Positions 23,994 to 61,351 of a DNA stretch of 64,000 bases are shown in pieces. The stretch spans positions 1,798,001-1,862,000 of the forward strand of contig JBPPKV010000017.1 of the NCBI GenBank assembly GCA_051294905.1. Reading direction: 5' to 3'. Position 1 is the stretch's first letter. Every line of letters starts with the position of its first letter. Both the position numbers and the translations under genes were made by a program. The notes under the pieces are model-generated. The model was given only the letters and a program-made list of their open reading frames with translations, was not told the origin of the DNA and made no database searches. Source of the DNA: Botryllus schlosseri (Eukaryota).

Positions 23994-24155
23994 TTACGGC
24001 AATTGAAAGCAGGCAAAGAGCACGGCGCTCTTTGCTGTTAAATTTTTGATTTTATAATTGTTCCCTCGGGGGACTTGAAACTGGGATCCTTCTCCAAGCT
24101 TTATCTTTTGGCCCCCGAGGGTCAGTTCAACGGCTCCTTCTTCGATCAAATAGGC
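23994..24155 (-). CDS. CENPC: Terminal exon encoding a Mif2/CENP-C-type C-terminal cupin domain
   Basis: tttttacag| then AYLIEEGAVELTLGGQKIKLGEGSQFQVPRGNNYKIKNLTAKSAVLFACFQLP*; matches the recalled GxxFxVPxGNxYxIxN signature and the C-terminal position of the CENP-C_C domain; missed by the ORF track (53 codons, no ATG); identity from motif recall, not a database search. Confidence 0.65.
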   Translation of the reverse strand, partial: AYLIEEGAVELTLGGQKIKLGEGSQFQVPRGNNYKIKNLTAKSAVLFACFQLP

Positions 24156-24755
24156 CTGTAAAAAGATTATATTCGTTCAGACAATATTGATTACTTGGGA
24201 CTCAGGCGTAAACAAACACTAATAACACATGTCAGAACAGTGATACCCAACCTAGGAGTAATTCTCAACGGAGAATTCGACTTTAAGGCAGTAAAGTGAG
24301 GCACACCGGGACCTGCACAACTTGATATTTATTTATGGAACAACTACTGAGCCTGAAACTGGGCTGTCTGAAACATGCATTACTTTTGCGCTCGAAATAC
24401 GCTTAAATGCCATTCTTCCTCTCCTGGTTAGTGGTACAAGTGCGGCTAACAAGACGATTTAGTGCGGCCAACAAATTCCAGCAAACCGGGAAGACTGTCG
24501 ATTGTTCGCTGATACCTTTGATATAGGTTATGTCCAATTGTCCTTTGTTCATATAGGCGGTTAGGCGCATAACTGACAAGCGCTGAATAGTTCTGTCTTG
24601 GCAATCTGAGCACCCCTTAAATGCTATCCGGAGAGGGAAATGCTGCATCCCGTAAATAAATGCAAGCTTAGAATTGTGTGGTGTCTGCGTCCTACGAAAG
24701 AGGTAGCTCCTCTTTTAGGCTCGTCTTGTATACAAAATGAGCAAGGATACAGTCA
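24156..24755 (-). other. Upstream part of the cupin-like region: coding-like, exon/intron structure unresolved
   Basis: GPGVPHFTALKSNSPLRITPRLGITVLTCVIS differs from the 20.6-kb paralog largely at synonymous positions; in-frame stops shared by both copies and a frameshift suggest short introns or pseudogenisation. Confidence 0.4.
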
Positions 24756-25611: not shown

Positions 25612-25877
25612 CGCTGTGCCCGGGCACGTCCTTTCGGGCTTTGTCACGTTTGGCCTGATGACCATTCGCCCTTGGACGACTCTGGATATGCCGGTTCTGG
25701 TTATATCAACGTTTTTCGACAGGAACACCCCCTTCGAAATTTCTTCTTGCTTCGGCTTGCCGGTCCCATGAACAACGACTCGTGAAAGCTCTGGTAAAGA
25801 ACAGGACTTGTAGCATACCAGAGTCTGCATGGCGGAAAACTTTTCAACGGTGAAAAGTCCATGCGATGCATTAAAGA
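25612..25877 (-). CDS. Candidate internal exon I (phase 1 to 0, 88 codons)
   Basis: ttattttttggccag| ... ACAGCG|gtgagt; only the phase-1 frame is open end to end (VFNASHG...RPNVTKPERTCPGTA); compatible with exon H2. Confidence 0.4.
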
Positions 25878-29239: not shown

Positions 29240-29338
29240 CTTCACGGGCAGCTTTGCTCGCTTTTCTCTTGTATGTCCTCTTCCTTGGACCTGTATCAGA
29301 CACGGGCGGAACATTATCGGACACGGGTGCAGCATTGT
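29240..29338 (-). CDS. Candidate internal exon H2 (phase 1-1, 99 nt)
   Basis: gagcag|AC AAT GCT...CGT GAA G|gt; (D)NAAPVSDNVPPVSDTGPRKRTYKRKASKAARE; tandem paralog of H1. Confidence 0.55.
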
Positions 29339-29399
29339 CTGCTCAGTACATATGATATTAGGATGAGAATGTTTGAAACCCTGGAATAAATGACAGCAC

Positions 29400-29477
29400 C
29401 TTCACGGACAGCTTTCCTCGCTCTTCTTTTGTATGCCCTCCTAGTTGTAACTGTGGCAGCCAGTCGTGCGGGATCAT
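29400..29477 (-). CDS. Candidate internal exon H1 (phase 1-1, 78 nt)
   Basis: tctcttttctcag|AT GAT CCC...CGT GAA G|gt; (D)DPARLAATVTTRRAYKRRARKAVRE. Confidence 0.6.
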
Positions 29478-31130
29478 CTGAGAAAAGAGATACATAAATG
29501 CAACCATTTCAAACTGCAACGTGTCGGCATACCTGGATAAGTGATCTTTGTAATCCCGATGACTTTCTTGAAGCCGGCCTCATCGAAGTCAGAGCTGCAA
29601 CAACACAAAAACATAGGAGTGGTGAACTACTAATAAATAATAACTTCAAATAAATCTTTTTAAATTATACTTGCTACTGGATATCATTGCTAGATTGGTT
29701 GCAAAAAAACGCTGCACAACAACATAGGCTGAATTCCAACCATAAGTCATTGTAACGATAGCATACCATCGTTATTTAGAGATACCGAGCCATGCGTGCA
29801 ATCTAGATGTAAGCTATGCTATTAGTCATATTGAACAATTGTTTACCTTTCTACAGGTATATTTAGTGGTTAAGATCAACGTTAGTGTAAGATTGTCGCC
29901 GGAATAAGTTGGTAAGATTTGCATTGTTAGATAGGATAGGTTTTCAAGTATTACACCGCCCATCTATGATATCTATGTTATTCTGAGCCAAGTGGGAAAG
30001 TCGTGAATACCAGTGTTACTAATCAGGTATTTGGTCTGACCCGGCTGGGCAATGAACCAACGACCTACAGATCAAGCCATACGATATCTTGTCAGTTGTA
30101 TATATCTATGTCTAGAAATGATACATAACAAATTTGACTCAATCCCGACTCGCATTAGCAAAGTTACCGCAGTTAGAAAACTTTGGAATTGAAAAAAATA
30201 GCATTTACGATTAGAAATCCACTTACGAATATCGGAAGTTGTATTGAACGCCTGGTTCAACTGGAAGCTTTATCCTCGGACTACGACGCCGTCCGGCTGC
30301 AGTGCCTACGGGCAGGATCGGAACTGACAACAAAAAGAAGATGAATTCACAAGAGGTATGGACCTAATTATTCCCGCACGGACACGCAGTTTCGATTATA
30401 CCAGTGCCGGGACAAGGAGCTCTCTACGAGTCAAATTCAGAAATTGACCTGAGCATCTATTCTAAAAGCATGGTCGAAAATGCTTGTTCGAAGAGTATGA
30501 TTTAGATGTCGCACTCGCTCCCTTGTGTATATCTAGTGGTTTTTATGTATCTACTGTAACCTGTTCCACATACATTGTATTATGTATTAGTTGCATAACC
30601 ATATAATCTATACCATAAGCTATACCATATATTCCTTGAAGTCTTTCTATTTATTCATTTATTTTCATGGTAATGGGCCAAGCGTGGAACGTTTTGCAAT
30701 CGTTAAAATCATTAACACGCCTATTTGTCCTTACATTATCAGAAATTTATCGTTTGTTCCTCCATCCATACCTCTATAGCGGTGGGAGTGTATTTCGCCG
30801 TTCTGCACATTTTTATATACTATATTTAATTTCTATACTAGTGTGTGTTTCATACCGCAAAGCACTGAATTCCCCACTTCAAAACATCACTAGCCAGATC
30901 AAGCAGTTGAGTTTTACATCAACCTAGCACCCTTATGTCACGTAGAGAGAGTGATGACACTTTCATAATATTGCATCACCCTATGAATATCAATAGGCCT
31001 TGCTAATGTTGCGTGGCCTTCATTGGTAGCAGGCGATTGGGCCATCTTCTAGTTGAATTGTGATTGTTGAGGTAGCGCAACGTTTGTATTTTATTGGTTT
31101 TAGTCTTCCACCAATCAGTTCATGGCTTAC

Positions 31131-31180
31131 CTGGGAGCTCTTCCACAATACGGTTCGGCTTCTGAACTTTTGACAGACTC
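31131..31180 (-). CDS. Candidate internal exon G (50 nt, read as phase 2 to 1)
   Basis: atctattttccag| ... CCCAG|gtaagc; (R)SLSKVQKPNRIVEELP bridges exon A1 (phase 2) to H1 (phase 1); all three frames are open, so the phase is inferred. Confidence 0.55.
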
Positions 31181-31850: not shown

Positions 31851-33637
31851 CTGGACGACTTAGGCTTTGACTTGGACTTCGGCGTCGATTTGGACTTTGG
31901 CTTCGATTTGGATTCCGGGTTCGATTTGGACTTTGGCTTTGATTTGGATTCCGGGTTCGATTTGGACCTTGGCTTCGATTTGGATTTCGTGTTCGATTTG
32001 GACTTTGGCTTCGATTTGGATTTCGGGTTCGATTTGGACTTTGGCTTCGATTTGGAGTTCGCCATACCAGCGGGTGTTGTGTTTTGCTCCCGTGATCTGT
32101 GATCTGTCGTAGATTTGGCAACTGAATTTTGGTGTCCTATATTTCCAATACTACTACTCATTTTGATTCTAATATAATCTGTAAAAATTGTGTATCCATG
32201 ATTCTAATTAAATTTTAAAAAACTGTGTAGCTCTAATTCTTACACTATTATAATTTCTAGAAATTTGTGCAATTTAAATTCTAATCTAATTTGGAAAAAC
32301 TGAAGGTTTCCTAGTTCTACAAGTCTGGTCTCAGAAGCCATCTGGCTGTTAACCAGCGTAATCTAATACTGACCTTCATATCCAATTTCAGATACCGAAG
32401 GAAGCTTTGGCGCTGGCCCTTTCCTACCGGAGGATGGTGAGACGGGCCTTTTCCTGCGTCTACTCTCTTGCCCGGAAGAGTCACTTGTTGCCAATCCTGG
32501 ACTGAGGTTACTGGAATCTGAATAAAGTATTAATTCCGATGAATTGACTGTACTGAAATTACACAATACTCGTTATTATGAGGTTGTTTCCCATGCATTG
32601 GTCAGATTTTAATATGTATTTTCGAGAGTACAACACTAGCTTTCGATTAAGTCCAGTTTTAATAAATGTTAGCGCACGGCTCGCCAGCTATAGGACTACA
32701 TATAACGCTGATTCTGCCATGCTCAGCAGTCAATCGCACGACTGGAGCTGTATATCTATCCGTAGGTTGGTAATCTATACTCCAACTGTGGGACTCACTT
32801 TCCGAAAGCTGTTGAGCACCGTGTGTCTTCGCCGAGGGAAGAGAGTTCAACCAGGACTGGATTCGTTTTGTCTTCTCGGCCTTGGACGGCGATGCGGACA
32901 AGGCAATCCCGCTGCGACTAACGAAACATTCAGTTACCGTAACACATATATTTCACAGCATATTTCATACTTTGAGGTTATGCAAATAAACATACCACAA
33001 AACAGGCACATAGCCAGCCGAGAAAAAGGGGGGTGTTTTGAAGAAAGGACGTGTTTCGAACACACGACGTTTTACATTCTATCGGATTTTTCAGGCTAAA
33101 TATATGCACAAGTGCATCTACTGCAGGAATCAGATAATATCGCACGTAATAACAACTCTACACTCATATACAAAGCCCCGCCAATGTTGAAGCGGGATTT
33201 CGCATTTAAATTAGTAGTGACCTCAACTTGATATCATACGACAGAACCAGTTTCACGAATGTTCATGTATCCTTTCAGGATATGTTAAACCCGACGTTTC
33301 AATCATTTTTATTTTGGCCCGTAACACACCCACAGAACCCAGTTGTATTATTAGGATATATAACCACTATCGTAAACTAAGATAACAGCAGAAAGATAAA
33401 TAAAGACATAATTTAACCAAAAGCGAAGCAGCACAATCAAGTTACAACATAGCGAGCTCACATCATATCAGATTTCACAAATTAAAATGTTCAATGCGGA
33501 ATCCAATACGAATTAGCTCAGTTGTTGAAATCACAACTGCCCACCTTTCTGATCTTCTGGCACTCGGGCCTGCCACTTCCTCCTGTTCCGTTGCCACCGC
33601 GGTTGACTCGGCAAAGGGAGCGCGTGCTCTATTTCTG
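31851..33637 (-). CDS. Exon-cassette unit 1 (D-C-B-A intact)
   Basis: D 33545-33637, C 32799-32911, B 32374-32517, A 31851-32121; AG/GT sites, phases 2-2, 2-1, 1-1, 1-2; open spliced frame ending in KSKPKSKSNP repeats. Confidence 0.75.
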
Positions 33638-35280: not shown

Positions 35281-38200
35281 CTGGACGACTTGGGCGTCGA
35301 TTTGGCCTTGGGCGTTGACTGGAACTTTGGCGGCAACTTCGACTTTGCCGTCGACTTTGACTTGGCCTTCACAGCAGATCTTGCAGTTGGACCCCGTGAT
35401 CCGTCATCTGTCGTTGATTTTGCAACTGAATTTCGGTACCCAATATTTTCAATACCATATGTGCGCAACATCTCGCAGGATGTTCACAAGGACATTCCTT
35501 TCGTGCGGGGAAATTCAGAGTCAAGCCGCCATGGCATTACTCACACCGTACAGTCATAGTAGTTATTGTGACAAATAAAATACGCATGCTGGTATAGAAG
35601 AACCAATGATGATGATGAAGTTTTGAGCTTGCCAACATCTTCTATTTTCTATCAAAACAGGACGGCGGCGAAGAAAAAGACATAGTTAACAAAGGCATGT
35701 TCAGATCTACCAAAAAGAAAACATATCGTGGGATGAACTGGAAAGATATTTCGCAGCAGACAGTGAGAGCATGGGCTGTGATGTTTTGAGTTACTGGAAA
35801 AGAAAAATCGTTTTGCTCATCCCAGGGCCGCTCTTCGAGAACTCGTACGCATGACTACAACATCACCTCCGTTGGAAAGTGTTTTCAGCCATGCAAAGAG
35901 AACTGCATAGGGATAAAGAGAAAGATATTTTTATTGAACGAGCCAAGCTTGGTTTACAGACATTAATCATTCTCGTGCTTGATTCGATATGAACGAACTA
36001 CACTTGAATTTTGCTGCATATACTTTCTCATTCACAATTTCACGCAATTTTTGAGAATTCACTAATTCTAATACCAATCTAATATGGAAAAACTGTGTAA
36101 CTCCAATTCTAATTCTAACCTAATCTGTAAAATATTGTGCAATTCTAATTCTGATCTAATTTTAAAACACTGCGTAGCTCTGATTCTAATACTAATAAAA
36201 TTCGTGCAATTCTAATTCTGATCCAATTTGGTAAAACTGAAGAGTTTCTAGTTTTCCAAGTCTGGTATCAGAAGCCATTTGGCTGTTGACCAGCGAAATC
36301 TAACACTTACCTTCATATCCATATTCAGGTGCCGAGGGACGCTTTGGCGGTGGTCCGCTCCCATCAGATGATGGCGAGACGGGCCTTTTCCGGCAACTAG
36401 TCCCTTGCCTGGCAGAGCCCCCTGCGAGAAATCCAGGAATGCGGTTACTGGAATCTGAACAGAGTATTAATGCTGATGATTCGAGCGCACAGTGCATGTG
36501 AGCGTTAGGACAGGAGTCGCATATCTATCGTTAGGTTGGTAATCTATATTCCCACAGTTGGACTCACTTTTTGAAAGCTGTTGAGCCGAGGGTTTTGCTG
36601 CCGAGTGAGGAAAGTCCAACGAGGTCAGCAGACCTTTCGTTTTCTCTTCCTGGGACAGTTTGGTCTCCTCACACCTGCTACTAATAAAAAATGACATATA
36701 GCAATTTTCGAAAATGAATCAAGATTCTGTAACAACATACAATTTCCAGCATATTTCACAAGCATTTTCATATTTAGAGGTGATGCGAACGAAGAGGGAA
36801 AACTAGGTGGTGTTTCAAAAACAGGATGTTTTAAATTATATCGGATTTATTGGCCTATATATATGCACAAATGCCGCTACTGCAGGAATCAGATAATCTC
36901 GCATATATCAACAGCTCCACACTCATACAAAGCCCTGCCAATGACGAAGCGGGATTTCGCATGATTTCGCATTTTAATTAGTAGCGACATCAACTTGATA
37001 CCATACAACAGAACCCTTTAGACAAATGGTAATGTATCCCGTCAGAATATGCTATATCCAACCTTGGTAGGTTCTGCACTGTGAACCTTTTTCATATATT
37101 ACAATTTTCGCTACATTATAAGATCTTTGGTTGAAATTGATTGCATTTCAATTGCGGTCAACTCAATGCATGGCGCCGGCAGCGTAAAACAATCAACACT
37201 TAACGAGCATGCACCTTGACAATCTCAAAAATGTCTGCTGTGAGATTGACCCGCCATGACACAACGTCAAAAGCGAAACACACTACATATAGTCGGCGAA
37301 TGATGTTTATCCAACCAATCAACGAAATTAATATCGTTGTCTGATGTACAAAATCTAGCGGGCGTACATGGTCAATCTTGACTTCATATATATAATATAC
37401 TGTAAAAACCAAATCCGTGCGATTGGGGTGCTGGCTACTACTGTGTAACTTGTGAATGGGGTAGTATTAGCATCAAGTATAGAATCCCGCTTTGCACCCT
37501 AAATATCACACTCCGAATACATTGTCTGGACCGGCCTAGACCGTTACGGCGTAAGATTATATTCCTTGCAAGACGTCGTCGAATTTGTTGTCAAAGCGAC
37601 AGCAGATATGGATTTCATGGGATCATTATATTATTTGATTGCCCCAGTTGATACATTTGGCGATATTTAAAACGTCAATATGTATTTGAGCATTGTAGCA
37701 TTTTGTGGCCCGACTCATCGCTAGGCATCGTGTACAACTTATACATTTGTATACGCTGTCACTTCACTGAAATGTAGGCAAGGAATTACCAATATTACGT
37801 CACATGACGTCATGAGGTTCAGGTTCGCGTTCACACAGAACCTTTCAAAAAGGTTCACGTTCACACAAACCTGAACCTTTCAGAGGTTCACACCATCCCT
37901 ACTCTCTACCAAGAACAACAATTTTATTCTAATGTTCCTTAATGAGATTTTTCTCGTGCCAGGCATGAATTGCTACAATAGGAAATCATACTTACATGAT
38001 GTGTGTGCAATGTGAATACGCTATGCAAGATTGGACAATTTCATCCCGGTCTGTTTCTAACTTTGCACAAGTAGATTATGCCATTGTTGGGATAGATTTT
38101 AGTTGGGCGTCAAATATCGCTGATAAGAATTCAAGCAGAAATTTTTTAAAAACTCTTTCACCTGGGAAGAAATTTCTCTTTTAGTTGACGCACGCCTCCT

Positions 38201-39155: not shown

Positions 39156-42100
39156 CTTGTTGACTTGGCCTTGGGTGTCGGCTTGGACTTGGCCTTCCCA
39201 GCCGGCTCTGCGGTTGGCTCCCGTGAACTGTGATCTGTCGTTGATTTTGCAACTGAATTTGGGTGTCAAATGTTTCCAATACTACATGTCCGCGACATTT
39301 TGAAGGAGGCAATAAACCGTACAGTCATAATAGTTATTGACGAATAAAATACCCATGCTGGCATGGTAGCTTGTAGCCTGCAAACAACTTCTAGTTTCGA
39401 TCACAAACAGAACAGCACCCAAGAAAAATATCATGGTTAACACGGGCTTTTTAACAAATGCTCTCAACTACATCAAAAAAAGAGAAAGATTGCTTCAGAT
39501 CTGTCCAAAGAAAATATATTAGGGAACGAAGTGAAAAGATATTCCGCAGCAGAGCTCGAGAGCGTGAAATGCGATGTTTTGAGTTACCATAAAAAAGAAA
39601 TAATTTTGCTGATCCCAAGGCTGCTGCTCGACAACTCGTAGGTGTACCTGCAACATTATCTCCATCAAAAAGAGAACTGTATAGCGCGAAAGAGAGAGAG
39701 AGAGATAGTTTCAACAAACTAGCCAAGTTTGGTGTACGGGCGTTAAATTTTTTCTCATTCGGAATTTCATTCAATATTTGCGAATTAACTAATTCTAATC
39801 CAATTTGTAGAGGTTCTTGGAGGTACTAAACTTCAATATACAGTTGAGTAGTACATTCATATTGAAATGAACCCGGATATTTTCGGCTGACACTCGTCAG
39901 GGATAATCGTCAGCAACTTGTAGAGAATTGGAAAGAACGTTGCATATCAACAATCGTATCACAAAATATGATGTCAGCGGCATGAACTTTTGAATGATAG
40001 AGCGTTCAATGTACTATTTTAAAGTGGTACACGAACCCCTTTTGTTGACAGAGTTTTGGTTGGTGTATTTTGATAAAAGTAGACTCCAAGGCACACAAAT
40101 GGAATTGTGAACGGCCCCTCTCAACGAAACGAAATCTGTCGTCTGGATAATTATTCGCACAAATCGGATTATTTAACAGATGTTTGCCGATGGCAGAATC
40201 AGATCATCGGGATCGTCACTGCGTCTGCAGGAACGTGTAAACAACCGCGTCCCCATATTCATCAGAGCACATGTAACACGCTAGGTGAAAAGCTCACCGT
40301 TAACTCATCCGCTGAAACTTGATGCTGACCTATCAAAGGCCTTTAATTCTGTGATCGGCAAACATCTGTTAGATAATACGATTTGTGCGAATATTTATGG
40401 AGACGACAGATTTCGTGTCGTTGGGAGGGGTCGTTCACACTTCCGTGTGTGTGCCTTGGAGTCGACTTTTATCAGAAAACACCAACCAAAACTCTGCCAA
40501 CAAAAGGGTTTCGTGTACCACTCAAAAATAGTACATTGAACGCTCTCCCATTCGAAATTTCATGCTGGTGACGTCATATTTCGTGATACGATTGTTGATA
40601 TACAACGTTCTTTCCAATTCTCTACTAGTTGCTGACGATTACCCCTGACCAGTGTCAGCCGAAAATATTTGGGTTCATTTCAATATGAATATACTATTCA
40701 ATCAAATTTGGAAAAAACCGTGCAATAATAAATCTAATCTAATTTGGTAAAACTGTGTAGCTCTAATTCTAATACTAATCTAATTTGAAGAAAATTGTGT
40801 ACCTCTAATTCTAATCTCATTTTGAAAAACTGTGTAGCTCTAGTTATGATCTAATTTGGAAAAACTGTGTAGCTCCGATTCTAATTCAAATCTCATCCGA
40901 AAAACCGTATATCCCTAATTCTAATCCTAATATATCATGTAAAACGGAAGATTTTCTAGTTTTCCAAGTCTGGTCTCAGAAGCAATTTGGCTGTTGACCA
41001 GCGTCTTCTCATACTGACCTTCATATCCATATTCAGGTGCCGAGGGTGGCTTTGGCGCAGGCTCGCTCCCACCAGATGATGGCGAGACGGGCCGTTTCCC
41101 GCGTCTAACACCTTGCCTGGAACAACCCCTTCGCGGCGATCTTGGAATGCGGTCACTGGAGTCTGAATGGAGTATTGATTCTGATGAATCGAGTCGAGTA
41201 ATGAAATTATACGATCCTTCACTAAGAGTGAATTTATCAACGAGAATAATAGTTTTCATAATAAAGTGGAATCCTCGAAACCCCGGTAGTTCGTAACACA
41301 GCGCACGATACGCGTCGTACAAATCCATGCAAGTTGTGGAAACGACACTTCTCCGACGTCATGATCAACCCACAGAATTATCACCAAACTTGAACAAACT
41401 ATCGGCACCATTCTTTGGAATGATCCTCATGTTCAGATTTTGAGAGCTTTTTAAGGTTGGTTTCAATCATTGGGATCAAGTCACTACCTTCGAGTCACGA
41501 GTCATTTCGAGTCATTGCACATTTTGACTCGAGTCAAGTCAAGTCAATCGATTTTCGAACTTGACTCGAGTCAAGTCAAGTCACTTGAATTTTGGAGCTG
41601 ACTCGTGTCAAGTCGAGTCGAGTCAAGTCAAGTCACGAGTCAAGTCACAATTCAAGTCGAGTTGCCTTTTCGAAGTATGAGGCATGATGACGTCATTGCA
41701 TTTTGCTAGCTGTCTGAAATACAGATTGAGTGGTTATTGATTCTGGATCTATGAAGAAATAGAGTTAAATATAAACGCAAGAAGGTGCTTTATTACTCAC
41801 ATATACGTAGAAATGCTTAACTACGTAAGCATAATCGCCCTCTGATTATTATAGTTACCAGCCAAAATAGAGAATAGAGAAACGAGTTGATTAGATGCAA
41901 TACGTTGCCCATTTACAAATTGATATGATACAATTCCAGCCTGCGCCGATGGTTGCTGGCTGTATAATTTTATATTGGAATTCAATTTCAATAAAACAGG
42001 AGGCTTGGTTAAATTAGGAACTGAGAACAGAAGTATACATTTTGCTATTCAATTACTTTACTATACTAGTTCACGACAACGCAATTTGTAAGCTTCGATC

Positions 42101-44201
42101 ACTTTGTTTGCGATCAATTTATTTGTGAGGGAACAATGGAGGCTCAGTAAAACCCACGATCATCGAATGATTGGTCGCTCTCATGGGTTACATCATCTTT
42201 TCACGTATTATCCGAACGTATGCAAGATACAATGATTATTATCAACATCGATTGCTTGATGACTCAAAATTGACTCGTGAATTTTGCTCCGAGTCTCGAG
42301 TTAATCCACATTTCTGATACGCCGAGTCAAGTCAAGTCAAGTCATTTTAGCAAAGTGACTCGAGTCAAGTCAAGTCATACGAAAAAGGTGACTCGAGTCA
42401 AGTCATGACTCGAGTCATCCCAACACTGTCATAAGCCAGATTTTAATATGTATTTTTGAAATAAGTACAATACAAGTACAATATTAAGTCAAGTTTGATT
42501 AAATTTTAGCGCTAGCGTTGCCAGCAATAGGATTACCGTAACTTTTCAAGTATAGTACGTCCCCATTGATAATGCACATACTTAAAATGACATGCAAAAT
42601 CTGGAAAAAAGCCTGCACCCATGTATAGTGCACACACTGCATTCGCGGTACATGAATAGTTGTGTTATGGTATACGATGTTATTGTGTTGGTGGTGTCAC
42701 TGTTCAACAATCATGACGTAACGATCGCTGATCATTATACAGTTAGCGGCATGGTCTCTAAATGATAGTAGATGGCAGATAAAGCCTGCGATAGTTCAGG
42801 GCAGCTAAAAGACATCTTGCGCACGAGGCCTATTATAGATGCGATTGCTCAGTCCAACGGTTATGTCGTGCGCACCTGGAATGTTGCAGATGCGATAAAT
42901 TAGCAAGGATTACCGAGCAGGTTAGGAACAATCAATGACCTAATTTCACTCTCGTACAAACGGCTAACCAACATAACAGGAGATCGCATGCTGTTGTGCA
43001 GTGCAGACGCCTTTCAGTAATTGGCAGCGCGTAACATTGATAATACGAATTACTGGGCACGACGGCTGAATGTGATGCGTGATTAAAATGACAATGAGGA
43101 AAGGCGTGATTTCAAGTGTTATTTCGAGGGAGGTTTTTTTAGTGCTTTTTGCACCCGTGCACCCTCGGTTTTATGACAAAAAATCTGTAAAATTTTGTGC
43201 ATTATAAATAGAAAATTTCATTACTAATAATGTTGATTTTGCCTAACTCAGCAGTCAACCGCATTGTGCATGTGAGCGTGACGACAGGAGCCGCTTATCC
43301 ATCTTTAGGTTGATAATCTATACTCCTACAGTTAGACTCACTTTCCGAAACCTGCTTTGCTGCCGAGAGAAAACTGTTTTGGTGCCGCTGTTGTGCTGCA
43401 GAGAGAAGGGAGTCCACTAAGGCCTGTATAGGTTTCATTATCCCTCCAGTAGACGGTGCAGTTTCCTCACACCTGCTATTTACAATAAATGACTTGTAGC
43501 AATTTTCCAAAATAAATTTCGTTACCGTAGCAAATATATATTTCGCAGCATATTTCACAAGCATGTTTCGTACTTTGAGGTTATATAAAACAACATACCA
43601 CCGCCAGGCGCGTAGCAAAGGGAGAAAAATAGGGGGTGTTTCGATACAGGATTTTTTAAATTATATCGGATTTATCTGGCTAAATATATGAAAAAACGCC
43701 GCTACTGCAGGAACCAGATGATCTCGCACATATCGACCCCGCGAATGTCGTACCAGGAGACGATATGATTTCGCATTCATATAAGTAGGGGCCTTAACTT
43801 GATATCATAACACAGAAACCGATGTTTCAATCTTTTTTATTTCGGCCCGTAGCGCACCCACGGAACCCAGTTGCAACATTAAGATATAGCCCAACTATGG
43901 TAAGCGAAGATAACAGCAAAAAAAACAAAGACATAATTTGTCCTTGATTACCAAAAGGGAAGCAGCCCGATCAAGTTACAACACAAAGACCTTGCCATTT
44001 TTTGGTCAAACAAGAACATGATTCCAATTCCGCATCAAATCAGATTTCACAAATAAAATGTTCAATGAGGAATCTGTTATGTACTGATAAAATCTAAGAT
44101 GAATTAGCTCGTTTGTTGGAATAACAACTGCCCACCTTGCTGATGTTCTGGCACTCGGGCCTGCCAAATCCTCCTGTTCTCTTATTGCCTCGGCAAAGAG
44201 A
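39156..44201 (-). CDS. Exon-cassette unit 3 (5'-truncated D, C, B, A) with Penelope and hAT insertions in introns
   Basis: D remnant 44136-44201, C 43342-43472 (+24 nt in frame), B 41019-41162, A 39156-39252. Confidence 0.7.
39871..39904 (-). ncRNA. Minimal type I hammerhead ribozyme motif in the inverted Penelope pLTR
   Basis: Minus strand TATCC-CTGACGA-GTGTCAGCC-GAAA-ATATCC-GGGT; intact CUGAnGA/GAAA core, one change in stem III. Confidence 0.55.
40641..40674 (+). ncRNA. Minimal type I hammerhead ribozyme motif in the Penelope pLTR (mutated core)
   Basis: ACCC-CTGACCA-GTGTCAGCC-GAAA-ATATTT-GGGT; palindromic AATATT stem III; core G to C change. Confidence 0.5.
41468..42428. mobile_element. 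hAT-type MITE, third copy of the 932 family
   Basis: 5' end CA(gtg deleted)TTGGGATCAAGTC, 3' end ATCCCAACACTG; follows GTTTCAAT; empty site in unit 4 (45157-45175). Confidence 0.85.
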
Positions 44202-44702
44202 CTGCTTTCATCATCTCCAGCGAAAAGAGCTTTCAGCCAGGGTAGCAAGACAGCTGTATAGTGGGAAAGAGAGAGAGAGTTTCATTAAACCAGCCAAGCT
44301 AGGTGTCACGACGTTAATCAATTTCATGTCCGATTTGCGATGGGCTGAACTTGAATTTTGCTGCTAATTCTGTCTCATACGCAATTTCATTCATATTTGC
44401 GAATTATGTAATTCTAATCTAATTTGGAAAAATTGTGTAGCAGTAATTCTAATACTAATCTAATTTGAAGAAAAATATATGTCTCCAATTCTTATTTAAT
44501 TTGTTAAAACTGTGTATCTCTAATTCTAATCTCATTTGGAAGAACTGTGTAGCTCTAATTCTATTTTAATTCAAACAAAAAAGTGTGTATCTTTAATTCT
44601 AATGGTAATTCAAATCCATTTGGTAAAACTGACGATTTTCTAGTTTTCCAAGTCTGGTCTCAGAAGCAATTTGGCTGCTGACCAGCGTAATCTTATACTG
44701 AC

Positions 44703-47700
44703 CTTCACATCCATATTCAAGTGCCCAGGGAGGCGTTGGCCCAGCCCCGCTCCCACCAGATGATGGCGAGACGGGCCTTTTCCCGCATGTAGTACCTGGC
44801 CTTGAACAACCACTTTGCTGCAATCCTGGAATGCGGTTACTGGAATCTGAATGGAGTATTTATTCTGATGATTCCAGTCGAGTAATGAATTTATACGATC
44901 CTTGTCACTAAGGGTGAATTTATCAACGAGAATTATGGTTTTCATAATAAAGTGGAATCGTTGAAAACCCGATAGTTCTTAACACAGCGTACGATAAACG
45001 ACGTACAATTCCATGCAAGTAGTGGAAACAACATTTCTCTGAAGTCATGATCAACCCACTGAATTATCACTGAACTTGAACAAACTATCGCTACAATTCT
45101 TAGAAACGATCCTCATGTTCAGACTTTGAGGGCTATTTTAAGGTTGGTTTCAATGCATTGGCCAGTTTTTAATATGTATTTGTGAATAAGTACAACACTA
45201 GCTTTCGATTAAGTTAAGTTACATTGAATTTTAGTGCTCGCGTTGCCAGCTATAGGACTACCGTAACTTTCCGAGTATAGTACGAACCGATGTATACTAC
45301 GCATACTTCAAATGACAAGCACATTCTGGAAAAAAGCCTGCACCCATGTATAGTACATACACTGCTTTCGCAGTACATGAATAGTTGTGTTTGGTATTCG
45401 AAATCATTCTGTTTGGTGGTGTCACTTTGGAACAACCATGACGTAACGATCTCAGATCATTATACAATTATCGGCATTGTCTCTAAACGATAGTAGATAG
45501 CAGATAAAGCATGCGAAGCCTGCGATAGTTCAGGCCAACAGCAAACATCTGGCGCAAGAGGTCTATTACAGATGCGATTTCTCAGGTTATGTCGTGCGCA
45601 CCAGGGATGTTGAAGATGCGTCTGTAGTGTTCAGGCCAGCGATTACATCTTGCGCACTTGGCATGCTGTATATGCGAATGTTCAGGCCTGTCGGCGATGC
45701 GAAAAATTAGCAAGGATTGCCGAGCAGGGATGCAGCAATCATTAACCAAATTTCGCTCTCGTACAAACGGCTAACCAACTTAGGAGATCGCATGCTGTTG
45801 TGCAGTGCAGACGCTTCTCAGTAATTGGCAGCGTGTAACACTGATAATACGAATTACTGGGCACGATGGCTGAATGTGATGCGCGATTAAAATGACAATG
45901 AGGAAAGGCGTAATTTCAAGTGTTATTTCGAGGGAGATTTTTTTAATGCTTGTTGCACCTGTGCACCCTCGATTTTAGGACAAAAAATCTGTAAAATTTT
46001 GTGCATAACATATGAAAATTTTCTGTACTAATAATGTTGATTTTGCCTAGCTCAGCAGTTAACTGCATTGTGCATGTGAGCGTGACAACAGGAACCGCTT
46101 ATCTATCCTTAGATTGGTAATCTATACTCCTACAGTTAGACTCACTTTTCGAAACCTGTTGGGCCGTGGGGTTTGCTATTGGGAGTAGAGAGTCCAATAA
46201 CTTCTTCATGAATTTCGCTGTCTCTTCCTCAGATTTCACGGTCTCATCACACCTGCTACTAACAGAAAATGACTATTAGAAATTTTCCAAAACAAATTTA
46301 GTTACTGAACCCATATATTTCGCAGCATATTTCACAAGCATGTTTCGTACTTTGAGGTTATACAAAACAACATACCATCACCAGGCGTGTAGCAAAGGGA
46401 GAAAATAGGAGGTGTTTCGATAACCGGATGTTCTACATTATATCGGATTTATCGGGCTAAATATATGCACAAATGCCTCTACTGTAGGAATCAGATGATC
46501 TCGCACATATTAACCCCGCAAATGTCGTAGCAGGAGACGTTATGATTTTGCATTCAAATAAGTAGTGACCGTAACTTGATATCATACAACAGAACCCGAT
46601 GTTTTAATCTTTTTTATTTCGGCCCATAGCACACCCATGGAACCCAGTTGTATCATTAAGATAAAGCACCACTACGGTAAGCGAAGATAACAGCAGTAAG
46701 AGAAACAAACACATAATTTGTCTTCGATCACCAAAAGAGAAGAAGCCCGATCAAATTACAAAACAAAGATCTTGCCATTTTTCATCCAAACAAGAACATG
46801 ATCTCGAGTCCGTATCATATCAAATTTCACAAATTAGAATGATCAATGCGGAATCAGTTACGTACTGATAAAATCAACGACGAATTAGCTTGGTTGTTGT
46901 AATAACAACTGCCCACCTTGCTGATCTTCCGGCCCGCGGACAGTTTTTCGTCTTACATGATAATATGGCCCGCCGGTTCCAGTGTTCCGAGACATTTTAG
47001 TGATTGTATGTTTTTATACACATGTATGCACAGCGAGCGAGGGTGGAGCTTACGCGTAAGTTCGTCGAAGCGAGAAGACTTGCATTATCGGCATTTACGA
47101 TGTACTGAACCCTAATGTCACTTGTGGTAATAATGGTTTTGTCGACGACAATGGTCATTTACACCAGGCCGATATTTCTTATTTTTGATTCCGTAACCGT
47201 CGACTTGTAGCACGTCCCACACTTTTAGGCTTTTGTAAGACACCAATTATGCCAGGTGTCGCCAACTGAAAACGGGTCAGCGGGCCAATTTCAAATCACG
47301 AGGCCGCGGCCCGCACGAATTCAATATCGAGATAGACAGGCCGCACAGTTTAACAACCACGCTATCTCGTCACCTACTTAATCCTAATGCATTGATATCT
47401 TGGTAAATATGGGGTACCGGGCTTATTGAACGCCTTGAAATCTTAATGAAGGATTGCACCATGAAGGTGTTGGCGGCCGTCGACGTGGAATTTGAATTTA
47501 CGAATTGACTCCCGATTTTTTGAAAGATTTTAATTTTTCTTGAAAGTTTTTCGCGCAACGCGCGATTCAATGCGACTTTATTTTTCGATTTTGATATAGT
47601 TACGCACTTTGCAATCAGAGCCCCACAGTACAGTTGCGAACAGATGCGCCACATATAGAAATACCAACTCGGAATCGTGTTCTCCTCACTATAACGACAA

Positions 47701-50288: not shown

Positions 50289-53200
50289 CTGGACGACTTG
50301 GCCTCGGGCATTGACGTTGACTTGGCCATCGGCTGTGACTTCGCCTTCCCAGCAGGTCTTGTAGTTGTCTCACGTGAACTGTGATCTGTTGTTGAATTCG
50401 CAACTGATTTTGGTGTCAAATATTTCCAAGACTATCATAAGTCCGCGACACTTTGCAGGATGTCGCACATCGTACAGACATAGTAGTTATTGTGACGAAT
50501 AAAACAGCCATGCTGGCATTGTACCTTGTAGCCTGCGAACAACCTGTAGTTAGAGCAGCACCAAAGAAAAAGACATGGTTAACACATGTTCTCAACTACA
50601 TCAAGAAAAAAGACGAAGATTGCTTCAAATCTGTCGAAAGAAAATATATTAGGGAATGTAGTGGAAAGATATTTCACAGCAAAGCTTGAGAGCGTGGAAT
50701 TCTGCTCATCCAAAGGCTGCTGCTTGAGGACTCTCCCTCTTCATCTCCATCAAAAATAGAGAGAGAAAGCGCGAAAGAGAGAGAGAGAGAGTTTCATTAA
50801 ACGAGCTAAGTTTGGTGTACAGACGTTAATCATTCTAATGGTTGATTTGTTGAGCTGAACTTGAATTTTGCTGTTAATTTTTTCTCATTTGGAATTTCAT
50901 TCAAGATTTGCGCATTAACCAATTATAATCTAATCTGTAAAATAATGTGTAGCTGTAATTCTAATTCTGAAGTAATTTGGAAAAAACTAGGCAGCTCTAA
51001 TCCTTGTCACTAAGGGTGAATTCATCAACGAGAATCATACTTTTCCTTGAAACCTATTTTGAGGTTGGTTTCAATCAGGGCTTTGGAGCAGCCGTAAATT
51101 TAAACTGCTCCAGCTCCGGCTCCGGAGCTCTCTTTTATCATACATTAGCTCCGGCTCCAGCTCCGGAGCCGCATTATAACCACTGCTCCGGCTCTGAAAT
51201 TATCGAATGGTCCTGTCTATATCAGGGGTGGGCCGCAAATGTGACCCGCGAGAGGGTTTTGCGTGGCCCGCGAGGTAATATCCTATTATATTACGGAAAA
51301 TGAATTGCTCAGATTGTGAACTTGCAATGCCAACCAAAAATTGCAATTCTGGCTGCGACACTTGGGATGTTGATGACTAAAATATCAGTTCCGACGCATT
51401 GGCAGATCCAGGGTCCAGTCACATTTTCAGTAAATCGTCGTACATTACAATAAACTAAAATAGTAGCGAAATTTTTCTTCACGCTTCGCGTGTTTAATTG
51501 TCACACGATTTCTTGCTTGGTAGCCTACCCCTACTGAAAATGAAAAAACGCCAAATTTGCCCGATTGAATCTATTCGCAATTACGGAAGAAAGTCTTTTC
51601 GCGTTTGAGCTCGCATACAAATCGTCGACGGTGAAATGTAGGCACAAAATGAGTGTCGCATGTTATCGGAGACCTTCGATATCGATGTGTCCAGACGCCG
51701 AATAGTCGTGTCCTTGCAAACTGAGCCTAGCGGGTGGTATACAATAGACCCGCAATACTCACCTAGTTTATTTATAAACTTAGAAAATTTTACCCGCTTG
51801 GCGTGGCTAGTGAACCGCGCACTCGTTCGTCAATTGCATGTGCCCCTTTAGCAGAAGAGGTTGGCCATTCCTGGTCTATATAGATTACTAATCTACTAAT
51901 AGGTTAGTTATCTATAGTAATCTAGAGTCCATCAGCCGTCAGTAACATTCGATGCAGCAACAAATACATATAGGTGCAGCCGTGCCGGCTTGTGACTTCA
52001 TACTGAATACCTGTCAATTTTCGACAACATCATAGTTGCACTAGAACGCTATTTACTCCGTGCCATTGCTGTGCAAGTGTGCATAGCATTGAAATTCATG
52101 CCTGGTGTTCAATTACGATAAATCAGCAGATGTGGTTGTTGCATATATAATAGCATCTTATGAAATATGTCGGAGCCGGAGCTACTCCTCAAATAACGGG
52201 CTCCAGCTCCGGCTAAATTTTATGTAGAGCTCCGGCTCCAGTGAAAATGCACGGCTCCGGGGCTCCGGCTCCGGGCTCCGGCTCCAAAGCCCTGGTTTCA
52301 ATGCACTGGCCAGATTCGGGTTCATTCCAATATGAATATACTATTCAATTGTATATTGAAGTTCTGTACCTTCAAGAAGCTCTTGAGATTTTAATATGTG
52401 TTCTCAAAATAGGTGCAACACTAGCTATCGATTCAGTCAAGTTTGATTGGATTTTAGCGTTCGCGGCGCCAGCTATAGGACTACCAATAACGCTGATTTT
52501 GCCCGGCCCAGCAGTCGACCTCATTGTGTATGTTAGCTCGACGAGAGCTGCATATCTATCCTCAGGTTGGTAACCTATACTCCCATAGTTGAACTCACTT
52601 TTTGAAAGCGTTCGAGCCGCGGGTTTTGCTGCCGAGGGAAGAGAGTCCAATAAGGTTTGCAGACGTTTTGTTTTCTCTTCCTTGGACAGTACGGTCTCCT
52701 CACACCTGCTACTAACAAAAAATGACTTGTAGCGATACTCGAAAATAAATTCAGTTACTCTAAAAAATATATATCACAGCATATTTTGCAAGCATGTTTC
52801 ATACAGAGAAATAAAAGGGGCGTTTCAAGAATAGGATGTTATAAATTATATCAGATTTGTAACACTAAATATATGTACAAATGCCTCTACTGCAAGAATC
52901 ACACAATCTCGCACATAATAACAACACCATACATAACCCCGCCAATGTCGTAGCGGGAGACCTCATGATTTCGCATTCAAATAAGTATCGACCTCAACTT
53001 GATATCATACAATAGAAACAGTTTCAAGAATGGTAATGCAACCCGTCAGAATATGTTATACCCGACGCAATGCGATCAAGTTACAGCACAGAGATCTCTT
53101 TTTGCTGTTTGTTGATTACAGGTTAAAATCGACCCAACAAGAAACGTAAAGGAGAATAAACTTCTCACTAGTACACGGAACTGAAGATGGACGGTGCTGG

Positions 53201-53988: not shown

Positions 53989-54186
53989 CTGTTTGTAAAT
54001 AGGCAGGTTAAAATCGAACTAATAAAAATGTAAAGACGCCTCACTGGCACCCGAAACCACCAATGGACAGTGTTGGATGAAGACGCCAATGATATGAACA
54101 CTCGAGTCTGAATCGAAAAATTATTTTAATGATTCGAGTCAAGTATGACTAGATGATTACTTCAAGTACTCAAACTATATGCTCAT

Positions 54187-56708: not shown

Positions 56709-59700
56709 CTGGACGACTTGGTCTTTGGCGTCGACTTTGGCGTCAACTTGGTCTTTGGTGTCGACTTTGGTGTCGACTTCGACGTCAACTTGGTCTTTAG
56801 TGTCGACTTTGACGTTAACTTGAGCTTCGGCATCGTCTTTGACATCAACTTGGCCTTGGACGTCGACTTTGACGTCAACTTGGCCTTGGGCGTCGACTTT
56901 GAGGTCAACTTGGCCTTGGGCGTCAACTTTGACTTGGCCTTCCCAGCATGTCTTGTAGTTGACTCCCGTGAACTGTGATCTGTTGTGGAATTCGCAACTG
57001 AATTTTGGTGTCAAATATTTCCAATGCTATATGTCTGTGACACTTTGCAGGACGTCATACATCATACAGTCATAGTAGGTATTGAGACGAATAAAATACC
57101 CATGCAGGCACAGTATCTTGTGGCCTGTGAACAATTTCTAGGTATAATCACCAACAGAACAGCACTACAGAAGAAAAAGCCTTAGTTAACACAGGCCTTT
57201 TTACACATGCTCTCAACTACATCAAGTAAAAAGTGGAAGATTGCTTCAGATCTATCTAAAGAAAATATATTAGGGAATGAAGTGGAAAGACATTTCTCAG
57301 CAGAGCTTGAGAACACAGAATGTGATGTTTAGAGTTACTGGAGCTCAGCACGAGAACTCGCAAGTGTGCGCACAGCATCACCTCCATCGGAGAGAGTTTT
57401 CAGACATGGATGCAAGAGAACTGTACGGTGGGTTTAAGAGAGAGAGTATCATTAAACCAGCCAAGCTTGGCGTACAGAAGTTGATCATTATCATGCTTGA
57501 TTTGCTGTGAGCTGAACTTGAATTTTGCTGCTCATTCGGAATTTCAATCAATATATATGCGAATTAACTTATTCTAATCTAATTTGGAGAAAATTGTATA
57601 GCGCTAATTCTAATCTAATTTAGAAAAACTTTGTAGCTTCAATTCTAATTCTAATCTAATTCATAAATAAGTGTGCCATTTTAATTCCAATCTGATTTGG
57701 TAAAACTGCGTAGCTCTTATTCTAATAATAATCTAATTTGGAAAAAAATTTGTATTTTTAATTCTAAATGTAATTTGGAAAAAACGCATATCTCTAATTC
57801 TAATTGTAATTCTAATCCATTTCGTAAAGTTTAAGATTTTCTAGTTTTCCAAGTCTGGTCTCAGAAGCAATTTGGCTGTTGACCAGCGAAATCTTATACT
57901 GACCTTCAGATCCATGTTCAGGTGCCGAGGGTGGCTTTGGCGCAGGCCAGCTTCCACCAGGTGATGGCGAGACGGGCCTTTTTCCGCGTCTAGTACCTTG
58001 CCTGGAAGATCCCCTGCGTGGCAATCCTGGAATGCGGTCGCTGGAACCTGAATAAAGTATTGATTCTGATGATTCGGGTCGAGTACTGAAATTATACGAT
58101 CCTTGTCAATAAAGACTGGGTCACATTCTCGTGAAATCGTACCGCGTACGATTCTCACCATCTCACTAAATTGGCCAAAATGAGCGATTACGTAATCGCT
58201 GAACGAAAAGTGAGAATAAAGGTAGCGCTGTTTCGCATGTTGTCGCTGCCTAGCGTCAGCCGAGCCTCTCGCGACCTCTTATTGCGGGTATCAATTCTCG
58301 CAATTTAGCTCGTCGAGTCCACAATACGCTCGTACGAATCGCTCTCCCCGCATAAGGTCTGCGTAAGGTCCGCGTAAAAAACGAGAGAGAGGAGGCTTTT
58401 TACGCGCCAAGCAAACGAGAGAAAAGAAAGGAAAGAAACTAAAGAAATGCTTTACGCGCCCTACACGCCATACGATTTTACTTACAATGTGACTGATGCT
58501 TAAGAGTGAATTTATCAACGAGAATAATAGTTGTCCTAATAAAGTGAAATCCTTGAGACCACGATTGGCCGTAACACAGCTTACGATACACGTCGTACAA
58601 CTCCATGCAAGTAGCGGAAACGACACTTCTCTGAAGTTATGATCAACCCACTGAATTATCACCAAACTTGAACAAACTACCAGCACCAGTCTTTGCAACG
58701 ATCCTCAAGTTCAGATTTTGAGGTTGGTTCTAATAAACTGGCCAGATTTTCTCAATTATTTTTAAAGCAAGTACGACACTAGCTTGCGATTAAGTCAAGT
58801 TTGATTGAATTTTAGCGATCGAGTTGCCAGCTATAGGACGACCAGTAACGCCGATTTTGCCCGGCCCAGCAGTCGACCTCATTGTGTATGTTAGCTTGAC
58901 GACAGGAGCTGCATATCTATCCTTAGGTTGGTAATCGATACTCTTACAGTTGGACTCACTTTTTGAAAGCTGTTGAGCAGTGGGCTTTGCTGCCGACGAA
59001 AGAGAGTCCAATAAGGTCTGCAGACACTTCGTTTTCTCTTCCTTAGACCGTACGGTCTCCTCACACCTGCTACTAACAAAAAATGACTTGTAGCGATATT
59101 CGAAAATAAATTCAGTTACTCCAAAAAATATATATCACAGCCTATTTTGCAAGCATGTTTCATACAGAGAAATAAAAGGGGCGTTTCAAGAATAGGATGT
59201 TATAAATTATATCAGATTTGTAACACTAAATATATGTACAAATGCCTCTACTGCAAGAATCACACAATATCGCACATAATAACAACACCATACATAACCC
59301 CGCCAATGTCGTAGCAAGAGACCTTATGATTTCGCATTCAAATAAGCAGCAACCTCAATTTGATATCATACAACAGGACCAGTTTCACACGTGGCAATGC
59401 ATCCCGTCAGAATATGTCATACCCGACCTTTCAATCTTTTTATATTTCAGCCCGTAGCAGACCCAAAGAAGCCAGTTGTATTAATAAGATATAGGAAATA
59501 CTTGAAAGCTGGTTCGTGGTACTATAGATAACTAACCTACGGATAGATATCCAACACCCGTCGTCACGCTTGCTTGCCCGGAGGAAATTACTGCTCAGCA
59601 ATCTGAACGCAGCATAATTGCTGATCCCATACCTGACGACCCGCGCCTAAATTCAATAAAGTTGATCTTCTTTGAAAGCTACTGTCGCACTACTTCCGAA

Positions 59701-61351
59701 AATATACATTAAAATCAGACCAGGGCAATGAAACCCCCTTGAAATACACCTCAAAGTCTGAAAATCGGCATTGTTCTGAACAATCGCAGTGACGCATAAC
59801 AATGACCATAACAATGGTCCTTGCGTGGTTGCGATTGTTCAGAACAATGCATATTTTCAGACTTTTAGGTGTATTTCAAGGGGGTTTCATTGCCCTGATG
59901 AGATTTTAATGTATATTTTCGGAATCAGTGCGACGTTAGCTTTCAAATAAGACCAACTTTATTGCATTCAGGCGCGCGGGTCGTCAGCTATGGGATTAGC
60001 AATTATGCCGCGTTCAGATTGCTGAGCAGTAATTTCCTCCGGGCAAGCAAGCGTGACGACGGGTGTTGGGTATCTATCCGTAGGTTAGTTATCTATAGTG
60101 GTAAAGAACTTGATTATAGCTATCAATTCAAGATCCATTGTAAAAGTGTGCAGCTAACTCTTGAAAAGAGGCACCCGAAAATTCTTCGAGTTCAATGAAT
60201 ATTCTTTTGCAATGGATGTTGTATTGAAAGCCGTGATATAGGCCTAGCACCGCTATGGTAAGCAAAGATAACAGCAGAAAGAGAAACAAAGGTATAATTT
60301 GTTCTTGATTACCAAAAGTGAAGCAGCGCGATCAAGTTACAACACAAAGATCTTGCCATTTTTCGTTCAAACAAGAACATGATCTCGATTCCGTATCATA
60401 TCAAATTTCACAAATTAGAATGTTCAATGCGGAATCTGTTATGTATTCATAAAATTGACGATGAATTAGCTCGGTTGTTGGAATAACAACTGCCCACCTT
60501 GCTGATGTTCCGGTACTCGGTCCTGCCAAATCCTGCTGTTCTCTCACCGATGCGACAAAGGGACTGCGAGATCTCGTTTTGCTGTTTGTTGATTGAAGGT
60601 TAAAATCGAACCAACCAGAAACATAAAGGAAAATAAACTCCTCACAAGTACTTGAAAATGCCGATGGACAATGTTGGATGATGAAGACAATCATTGGAGT
60701 AATTGAATCAGAATCGAGAAAGAATTCTAAAGATTAAAGCCGAGTAGAGAGCGGATGATTTCTACGAGGGAAAATTTAGGCTCCAATCTTAGCCAATGGG
60801 TCCACAAGATAAAAAAAAGGGTTGATATCCGCTGGGTTAGAGTATATTTTACGAAATAAGAGTTTTATTTCTAAATTGAAAGCAGTGAATTACATTGCTA
60901 ACATATGCTGCTGACTGGAAATGTTTATATGAGGCTTGGTACGATAGCTACAGGTTCCATGGTGTCGTGATACAATTGTCTCTCTGCGTGGTGTTTATAT
61001 CTTATAATTTAGACAAATTAGGCTCACTCTTTACCAAGTACAACAATTTTATTCTAATATTTCTTAATGAGATTTTTCTCGTGCCAGGCAAATATCGCCG
61101 ATACAAACTCAAGCAGAATTTTTCAAAAACTCTTTCACCTGAGAAGAAATTTCTTTTTTAGTTGACGCACATTTCCTGGTAGTAGGTTACCCATAGAATA
61201 TGAGTCGACGGTCGACACCTCACTGCAGGTGGAGGAAATCTCATCACCTGAAAAAATACGCATGTGCTATCCATCCGCCGGAGATCATAGAAGGGAGAGC
61301 AACGACAAATCATACACACCTTCCCCCTGGCTTTCCTTGGATTCCCGGACC
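56709..61351 (-). CDS. Exon-cassette unit 6 (complete E-D-C-B-A, 656 nt spliced, open)
   Basis: E 61320-61351, D 60498-60581, C 58960-59066, B 57904-58047, A 56709-56997: GPGIQGKPGGSKTRSRSPFVASVREQQDLAGPSTGTSARCEETVRSKEEKTKCLQTLLDSLSSAAKPTAQQLSKSSSDRIPGLPRRGSSRQGTRRGKRPVSPSPGGSWPAPKPPSAPEHGSEVANSTTDHSSRESTTRHAGKAKSKLTPKAKLTSKSTPK...KSS; start codon not found. Confidence 0.75.
57560..57830. repeat. Degenerate CTAATTCTAATCTAATTTGG-AAAAACTGTGTAGCT array in the B-A intron (also 32150-32310, 36060-36240, 40700-40930, 44400-44610, 50920-51000)
   Basis: Repeated units of about 30-35 bp, copy number differing between cassette units. Confidence 0.8.
58113..58500. mobile_element. PIF/Harbinger-type MITE
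   Basis: Ends AGACTGGGTCACATT / AATGTGACTGATGCT; 3-bp TSD TAA; empty site CACTAAG(A/G)GTGAATTT in units 3, 4 and 5. Confidence 0.75.
59522..60098. mobile_element. Near-perfect foldback MITE (about 265-bp arms, short loop)
   Basis: CTATAGATAACTAACCTACGGATAG.. / ..CTATCCGTAGGTTAGTTATCTATAG; TGGTA on both flanks; related sequence near 23.0-23.25 kb and 51.9 kb. Confidence 0.85.

Follow-up and report, generated by a model that had tools for sequence, protein, structure and literature searches.

Does a 64,000-nucleotide (nt) stretch of the Botryllus schlosseri genome (assembly GCA_051294905.1, contig JBPPKV010000017.1, positions 1,798,001 to 1,862,000 of the forward strand; hereafter the window, in whose own numbering positions are given) carry a gene of the CENP-C family on its minus strand, and do the tandem blocks found there belong to the coding sequence of that gene? 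CENP-C links centromeric chromatin to the kinetochore as their central scaffold. The original prediction, made from the letters alone, proposed a CENP-C-like gene at 23994-61351 with a middle region expanded by amplification of an exon cassette. The sequence supports reading 62183-23994 (minus strand) as a CENP-C/Mif2 family gene, protein-coding and intact. The cassette array is real and stands in frame with a terminal cupin domain; it is not central to the protein, covering instead nearly everything before the CENP-C motif.

The cupin end and a 23-exon reading frame

The family assignment begins at the 3' end, where exon T (24155-23994; 53 residues and a stop) was found with its acceptor as described. 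CENP-C_C (PF11699) is its top Pfam family: the exon matches profile positions 39-82 of 85 with E 1.1e-10 and 42 bits, where the cut-off is 29. The runner-up, Cupin_2, reaches 31 bits, and no other cupin family scores better. In the PDB the best matches are S. pombe Cnp3 (6o2d), CENP-C (7x85) and Mif2 (2vpv), and within this genome exon T is the best match of all to a canonical CENP-C cupin. The splice from exon I into this region, which the original prediction could not settle, joins the phase 0 end of exon I to an exon opening on a whole codon, and when I+T are joined and aligned to two proteins with full CENP-C_C domains (P0005 and P0007) the alignment continues ungapped for 16-22 residues upstream across the junction. 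From phase, position, this junction-crossing alignment and conservation in the family, we infer that exon I encodes the first half of the cupin. P0005 (247 residues, from another source) is itself a fragment with two CENP-C_C cupin halves in tandem, such that duplication of cupin exons may occur elsewhere too.

Moving upstream, the exon ends proposed for G (31131), H1 (29400), H2 (29240) and I (25612) all lie at GT donors and form a phase-consistent chain. The chain A1-G-H1-H2-I had missed two exons, X and Y, between G and H1; together these add 159 nt, so that the phase is right whether G is joined to H1 directly or by way of X and Y. The resulting minus-strand model leads from a TATA box (62183-62171) through an ATG at 62055 to the stop at 23994, with 23 exons in the order exon 1, cassettes, G, X, Y, H1, H2, I, T. 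The lower limit of the predicted gene was right, and its upper limit now lies beyond 61351. Spliced, the model comprises 2871 nt with AG/GT at every intron, and cassette exons and cupin end share a single uninterrupted frame of 956 codons. The predicted protein starts with MDFQK and proceeds at once into the cassettes; it is rich in Ser (16%), Lys (13%) and Pro (10%), with 196 K+R against 73 D+E. G+C content is ~41% throughout the window, which has a eukaryotic look.

Exon 1 ends in the phase that exon C requires, the putative 5' untranslated region (~98 nt) contains no upstream ATG, and the block holding both TATA box and ATG (62260-61980) is 96-97% identical to two paralogous copies of the locus (paralogs B and C, described below), above its surroundings. 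No convincing additional exon was seen in the 5' region 63525-62200. Upstream of the TATA box, at 62274-62360 (minus strand), lies a short open block (…FGPDESYSKCIEWNKIGRMNIL…) resembling the sequence that follows exon Y in the distant paralogs L029 and L027.

Self-comparison places the tandem array at ~32 to 61.5 kb, as ~30 kb of repeated blocks that are 60-92% identical. Three exon types recur in it (six C, five B and five A), and all 16 copies are open in the expected frame with AG/GT sites. Exon C (107-131 nt, phase 2>1) has a NAGNAGCAG acceptor and a GTGAGT donor; exon B is 144 nt in every copy (phase 1>1), with a GTCAGT or GTAAGT donor; exon A (97-289 nt, phase 1>2) uses GTGAGG or GTGGGG, and its individual lengths of 289, 115, 97, 145 and 271 nt are each 1 mod 3. 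The C-B-A unit is frame-neutral (2>1, 1>1, 1>2) and encodes a module of ~130-190 residues, present in five to six in-frame copies; the six cassettes originally counted hold for C-type exons, with one fewer of types B and A. Exon C encodes a short K-x-LQTLLDSL stretch and exon A a hypervariable S/T-P-K repeat (with an 18/36-nt coding minisatellite for K-S-K-P in the copy at 32121-31851); the K-R-P-V-S-P-S core of exon B is near-invariant even at synonymous sites, within a fast-changing context.

The array is not entirely regular. The 131-nt C exon of cassette 3 (43472-43342) is out of phase after B, and is presumably skipped or alternative for that reason; three D-type exons, the first of them a multiple of three in length, may be optional in the mRNA. 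Most cassettes carry a 35-41-nt minisatellite in the intron after exon B (57571-57816, 44409-44571, 40696-40931 and 36064-36159). We had considered a resemblance of the K-x-LQTLLDSL stretch to the Mis12-binding helix of CENP-C, and dropped this when Pfam and PDB searches gave no support.

Table 1. Features of the gene model and its surroundings, in window coordinates and ordered along the minus strand.
Feature	Position	Strand	Remarks
TATA box	62171..62183	-	GTATATAAATAGG; 128 nt upstream of ATG
Exon 1, coding part	62042..62055	-	ATG GAT TTT CAA AA, then gtgagt; MDFQ + 2 nt; leaves phase 2; identical in paralogs B and C
D-type exon	60498..60581	-	84 nt, phase 2>2, GTGGGC donor, open frame
Cassette 1	56709..59066	-	C 59066-58960, B 58047-57904, A 56997-56709
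Cassette 2	50289..52705	-	C 52705-52599, A 50403-50289; no B exon found; C>A in phase
Cassette 3	39156..46252	-	internal C-B duplication: C 46252-46146, B 44846-44703, C 43472-43342, B 41162-41019, A 39252-39156
Further D-type copies	44204-44136, 33637-33545	-	
Cassette 4	35281..36674	-	C 36674-36568, B 36454-36311, A 35425-35281
Cassette 5	31851..32911	-	C 32911-32799, B 32517-32374, A 32121-31851 (A1 of the original prediction)
Exon G	31131..31180	-	50 nt, phase 2>1; paralogs 96-98% identical, synonymous changes only
Exon X	30227..30323	-	derived CENP-C motif (...AAG-RRRSPRIKLPVEPGVQYNFRY); 26 genome places
Exon Y	29533..29594	-	SDFDEAGFKKVIGITKITYP; conserved in distant paralogs L024, L025, L027, L028, L029, L031
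Exon H1	29400..29477	-	basic (…RRAYKRRARKAVRE); GT donor
Exon H2	29240..29290	-	PRKRTYKRKASKAARE; tandem duplicate of H1 end
Exon I	25612..25790	-	179 nt, phase 1>0; ends ...CCG GGC ACA GCG, then gtgagt
Exon T (terminal)	23994..24155	-	53 aa + stop; second half of CENP-C_C cupin; acceptor tttttacag
3' flank	23594..23945	-	352 nt; genome search matches mostly adjoin family members, 74-96% identity
Scrambled inverted gene fragment	20180..21322	+	copy of T exon + intron (20180-20847), then B-exon copy (21030-21322); 2.7 kb past the 3' end of the gene

A derived CENP-C motif in a multi-copy family

The original prediction reported no convincing CENP-C motif on this strand. A derived form of the motif is nevertheless encoded by exon X (30323-30227), which we located through the open reading frames of distant family members. 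Nine aligned members share R-R-S-x-R, L-P-V and two Tyr without exception. Searched against 177,635 PDB sequences, the profile of this exon placed the CENP-C motif peptide 4X23_V (25 residues) at rank 1, over VRRSNRIRL, with an E-value (0.13) that is weak alone; phmmer of exon X singly found nothing in the PDB, and only the family profile reached 4X23. In that structure, R717 and R719 of the rat protein make the contact with the H2A/H2B acidic patch, and the CENP-A tail is bound by Y725 and W726 (PMC6776904). Both basic positions of the arginine anchor (RRSxRxR) are retained in exon X, as R and K/R. The placement of the motif is likewise familiar: it begins ~190 residues before the C-terminus of the 956-residue model, with the cupin last, and in vertebrate CENP-C ~180 residues follow the motif (PMC549713).

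A canonical motif is not evident in this genome. The strict pattern R.S.R....P..[YFW]W had no match in six frames over 84 kb around the window and both paralogs, and genome-wide the canonical RRSxR....P..YW pattern occurred 7 times against 9 in the control, i.e. at chance level. One of these matches, at C3:35195668-35195709 (minus strand; RRSPSTRLTPPPYW), is the only one resembling a CENP-C motif and is an unconfirmed candidate for a canonical CENP-C, within a total that is at chance level. With the canonical pattern at this level and exon T the best cupin match, no better CENP-C candidate was found in the genome.

The extent of this family is considerable. The whole 41-kb locus (window 63525 to ~22585) is present in three collinear copies of 85-95% identity, the other two at C17:~107,000-140,581 (paralog B) and C16:~18,511,700-18,563,815 (paralog C), with homology beginning sharply at 63525. 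C1 carries two more cassette-bearing loci, one at 15.24-15.28 Mb and an oppositely oriented one at 15.55-15.59 Mb, and the five loci hold 5, 5, 7, 9 and 9 B exons. Beyond these, more distant members lie on C1, C8, C11, C13 and C15; their exons X, Y, I and T are still open, at 40-55% protein identity. At least 14 exons exceed the cut-off of the Pfam CENP-C_C model in the 495-Mb genome, and the motif-exon profile matches at least 26 places over ten contigs, several of them paired 5-7 kb apart. Altogether the family has more than 15 loci, at least five of them with cassettes, where one copy is expected.

Several features of these loci deserve record in their own right. Just past the 3' end of the C16 paralog, and in opposite orientation to it, is a tandem array with a ~560-bp unit (C16:18565400-18568900, minus strand; loci L006-L008), each unit consisting of a copy of the cupin terminal exon and the start of its 3' flank; several of the exons are still open. 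In the distant member L025 (3100-4500 of that locus, C13:~22,931,600-22,933,000), long H3-like and H2B-like frames lie within an intron, between the motif and cupin exons. The 3' flank of the window gene (23594-23945) is kept at 74-96% identity even beside members whose coding exons are only ~50% identical in protein; we rejected its interpretation as a high-copy transposon, since its 18 genome matches nearly all adjoin family members. The plus-strand fragment at 20180-21322 is debris, given that its exon order is wrong.

Coding constraint, transcription and competing explanations

Comparison with paralogs B and C separates the gene into two regimes. The seven 3' exons have dN/dS of 0.29 and 0.20 against the two paralogs, the cassette exons 0.75, and exon B among 14 copies 0.94 overall. 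Orthologous exons in the paralogs contain no stop, and exon indels are all multiples of three (3, 12, 15, 30, 36 and 54), partly as a result of repeats in exon A with units of 3, 6 and 12 nt, while flanking intron indels are of any length. Genome-wide, all B exons (36/36) and all C exons (35/35) are stop-free. A constrained 3' end joined to a fast-evolving, frame-preserving repeat region is the pattern reported for CENP-C elsewhere (PMC549713).

One competing reading leaves the cassettes out of the mRNA altogether; the real gene would then run from G to T, its first exon unseen, and the cassette exons would be conserved non-coding sequence or a separately transcribed repeat. No transcript evidence joins the cassettes to the 3' part, cassette dN/dS is 0.75, almost every copy of exon B has two open frames, cassette exons diverge faster than their flanks between recent paralogs, and conservation is higher in the intron immediately past the donors than in the exons. 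Such an arrangement would have to accommodate 16 cassette exons with invariant AG/GT, matching phases and one frame into G, X and the cupin, exon indels that occur only in frame, not one stop in 71 genomic B and C copies, and, upstream of the array, a TATA box with an ATG exon of the phase that fits exon C. We judge it very improbable.

The conservation next to the donors can be described more closely. With 13-20 copies compared for each cassette exon, identity within the exon is 0.71-0.82; it is 0.80-0.89 over the first 40 nt past the donor and 0.5-0.6 deep in the intron, so that the ~40-nt intron starts after B, C and D (e.g. 57903-57864, 58959-58920 and 60497-60458) are better conserved than the exons themselves. 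These stretches may be splicing-control elements for a repeated exon array.

Transcription was assessed over 23700-29699, the 3' 6 kb of the gene, with ~37 million reads sampled from four bulk RNA runs that carry the same species label (95% threshold). RNA reads appeared only as partial matches in an intronic repeat (26.9-27.7 and 28.9-29.1 kb). Because exons as similar between paralogs as Y (97-98%) would also catch paralog reads, all three copies appear silent in the sampled runs. One run, X1, contains 5-6% of the words of both tested stretches and so looks like low-coverage DNA, not RNA.

Several findings weigh against a functional CENP-C gene. Exons Y, H1, H2, I and T and the 3' flank drew no RNA reads, a weak negative given that the tissue and organism content of the four runs is unverified, and neither AATAAA nor ATTAAA lies within 500 nt of the stop. 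The gene is multi-copy, and CENP-C is normally single-copy. The Tyr-Trp pair of the motif is absent in 9/9 aligned motif exons, which have P-V-x-P-G-V/F-x-Y-x-F/I/L-x-Y instead (the two aromatic positions read P-G, or G-V when a gap is disallowed). Exon T has no close relative among 1.84 billion representative proteins (7 weak matches to a 52-residue query, 2 of them with CENP-C_C); exon I alone has no significant cupin similarity by Pfam, by hhalign against a CENP-C_C protein or by PDB profile search; and the cassette exons match nothing in Pfam or PDB. Finally, nothing resembling the N-terminal regions of known CENP-Cs was recognised. Profiles of the B and C exons match no PDB CENP-C entry and nothing in Pfam that would represent the Mis12- or CCAN-binding regions, although such regions are short and poorly conserved and the miss says little.

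Part of this could be accommodated if the family were derived from CENP-C and had left the kinetochore, its members now being dimeric, acidic-patch-binding, H1-like basic chromatin proteins (e.g. of germline or sperm) and the kinetochore CENP-C being another gene. Loss of the CENP-A-reading Tyr-Trp in every aligned motif exon, at least 26 motif exons and at least five cassette-bearing genes, silence in the four bulk runs and the lack of recognisable Mis12- or CCAN-binding regions in Pfam and PDB searches of the cassette exons would all follow this course, as would the S/T-P-K repeats, which we take to be akin to the SPKK repeats of sperm and linker histones. What makes the proposal rather unlikely in our estimation is that the other gene it calls for does not come forward: matches to the canonical motif do not exceed the control genome-wide (7 against 9), and no cupin in the genome is more canonical than that of the window's exon T.

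The apparent silence of the locus is also open to another account, namely that the window holds a recent duplicate on its way to becoming a pseudogene, with a frame kept open only through youth or through gene conversion from active paralogs. Zero RNA reads and the want of a poly(A) signal near the stop fit this, as do the debris nearby at 20180-21322 and the 560-bp cupin-exon array beside paralog C. Signs of conversion are present too, exon T being 9-10% diverged within flanks that are 3-4% diverged. Against these stand 2.9 kb of coding sequence at 5-15% divergence without a stop, frameshift or lost splice site in any of three copies, the dN/dS of 0.2-0.3 in the 3' exons, and a promoter and ATG block conserved above background; decay of this kind we consider quite improbable.

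The conversion signal concerns a short interval. Over 24155-23997, comparison of the window copy of exon T with each of the two paralogs gives 14-16 differences in 159 nt, mainly at synonymous positions, with 3-4% difference in the 150-nt flanks, and the version found in the paralogs is nearer to other family copies than the window version is. This suggests a short gene-conversion tract in exon T, from a donor that was not sampled.

Proposed function and comparison with known systems

Taking these points together, we think it probable that the window holds a functional CENP-C-family gene whose product combines a cupin dimer, an acidic-patch anchor and multivalent chromatin binding via the basic module, and whose expression is limited to tissues outside those sampled. 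By analogy with the family, the cupin would form a protein dimer and the kept arginine anchor (RRSxR-I-K/R-L) would dock on the H2A/H2B acidic patch of the nucleosome. The very basic repeat region may add many weak DNA or chromatin contacts, together with SP/TP kinase sites; with many weak contacts per repeat, cassette number would set the valency of chromatin binding. As other residues stand family-wide in place of the Tyr-Trp pair, with which the CENP-A tail is read, specificity for centromeric nucleosomes would be altered, supplied from elsewhere, or lost. The array itself probably arose by unequal crossing-over on the frame-neutral unit (2>1>1>2) before the locus was copied, and cassette number appears to have kept changing afterwards, as the differing B-exon counts of the five loci would indicate.

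On a wider view, a single-copy CENP-C may have turned into a radiating family of more than 15 loci, its aligned members bearing a rewired motif and a five-gene subfamily still amplifying its cassette. Such a history would fit an ongoing centromere-drive arms race or a newly born class of dimeric, acidic-patch-binding chromatin proteins; we put it forward tentatively, as possible and still doubtful. The combination of many intact CENP-C-like genes, changed CENP-A-reading residues and variable cassette number makes rewiring of nucleosome specificity, tuning by repeat number and a germline/somatic division of labor testable. If the family has left the kinetochore, it would be an example of a kinetochore module (acidic-patch anchor plus cupin dimer) being reused.

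CENP-C is usually single-copy, and its rapid evolution is a main argument for centromere drive (PMC549713). The window gene resembles CENP-C, Mif2 and Cnp3 in having a C-terminal CENP-C_C cupin, an RRSxRI(R/K)L sequence ~190 residues before the C-terminus, and a remainder that is long, basic, fast-evolving and probably disordered, with constraint (dN/dS 0.2-0.3) at the 3' end. It departs from them in reading PVxPGVxYxFxY in place of Tyr-Trp, in being multi-copy, in devoting about three quarters of its protein to the tandem repeat of one three-exon module, and in having neither expression seen in the four bulk RNA runs nor recognisable N-terminal Mis12- or CCAN-binding regions.

Retained duplicates of Cenp-C have a precedent in Drosophila, in the paralogs Cenp-C1 and Cenp-C2, one of them male-germline-biased in expression (bioRxiv 10.1101/134817; PMC12724597); the abstract of the former study states that duplication of CenH3 and Cenp-C "can be said to be rare." The germline bias of the fly gene offers one way to explain silence in bulk tissue here. 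The fly has two genes, in contrast to at least 26 motif exons on ten contigs in this genome.

For the array, the closest parallel is with the grasses, in whose CENP-C genes exons 9-10 or 11-12 are tandemly duplicated (Talbert et al, 2004, PMC549713). Both cases show fast-evolving, in-frame tandem duplication of small exon groups. The grass genes have one extra two-exon unit, whereas the genes described here carry five to nine three-exon units each, plus optional extra exons, and copies of the amplified array lie at five loci or more.

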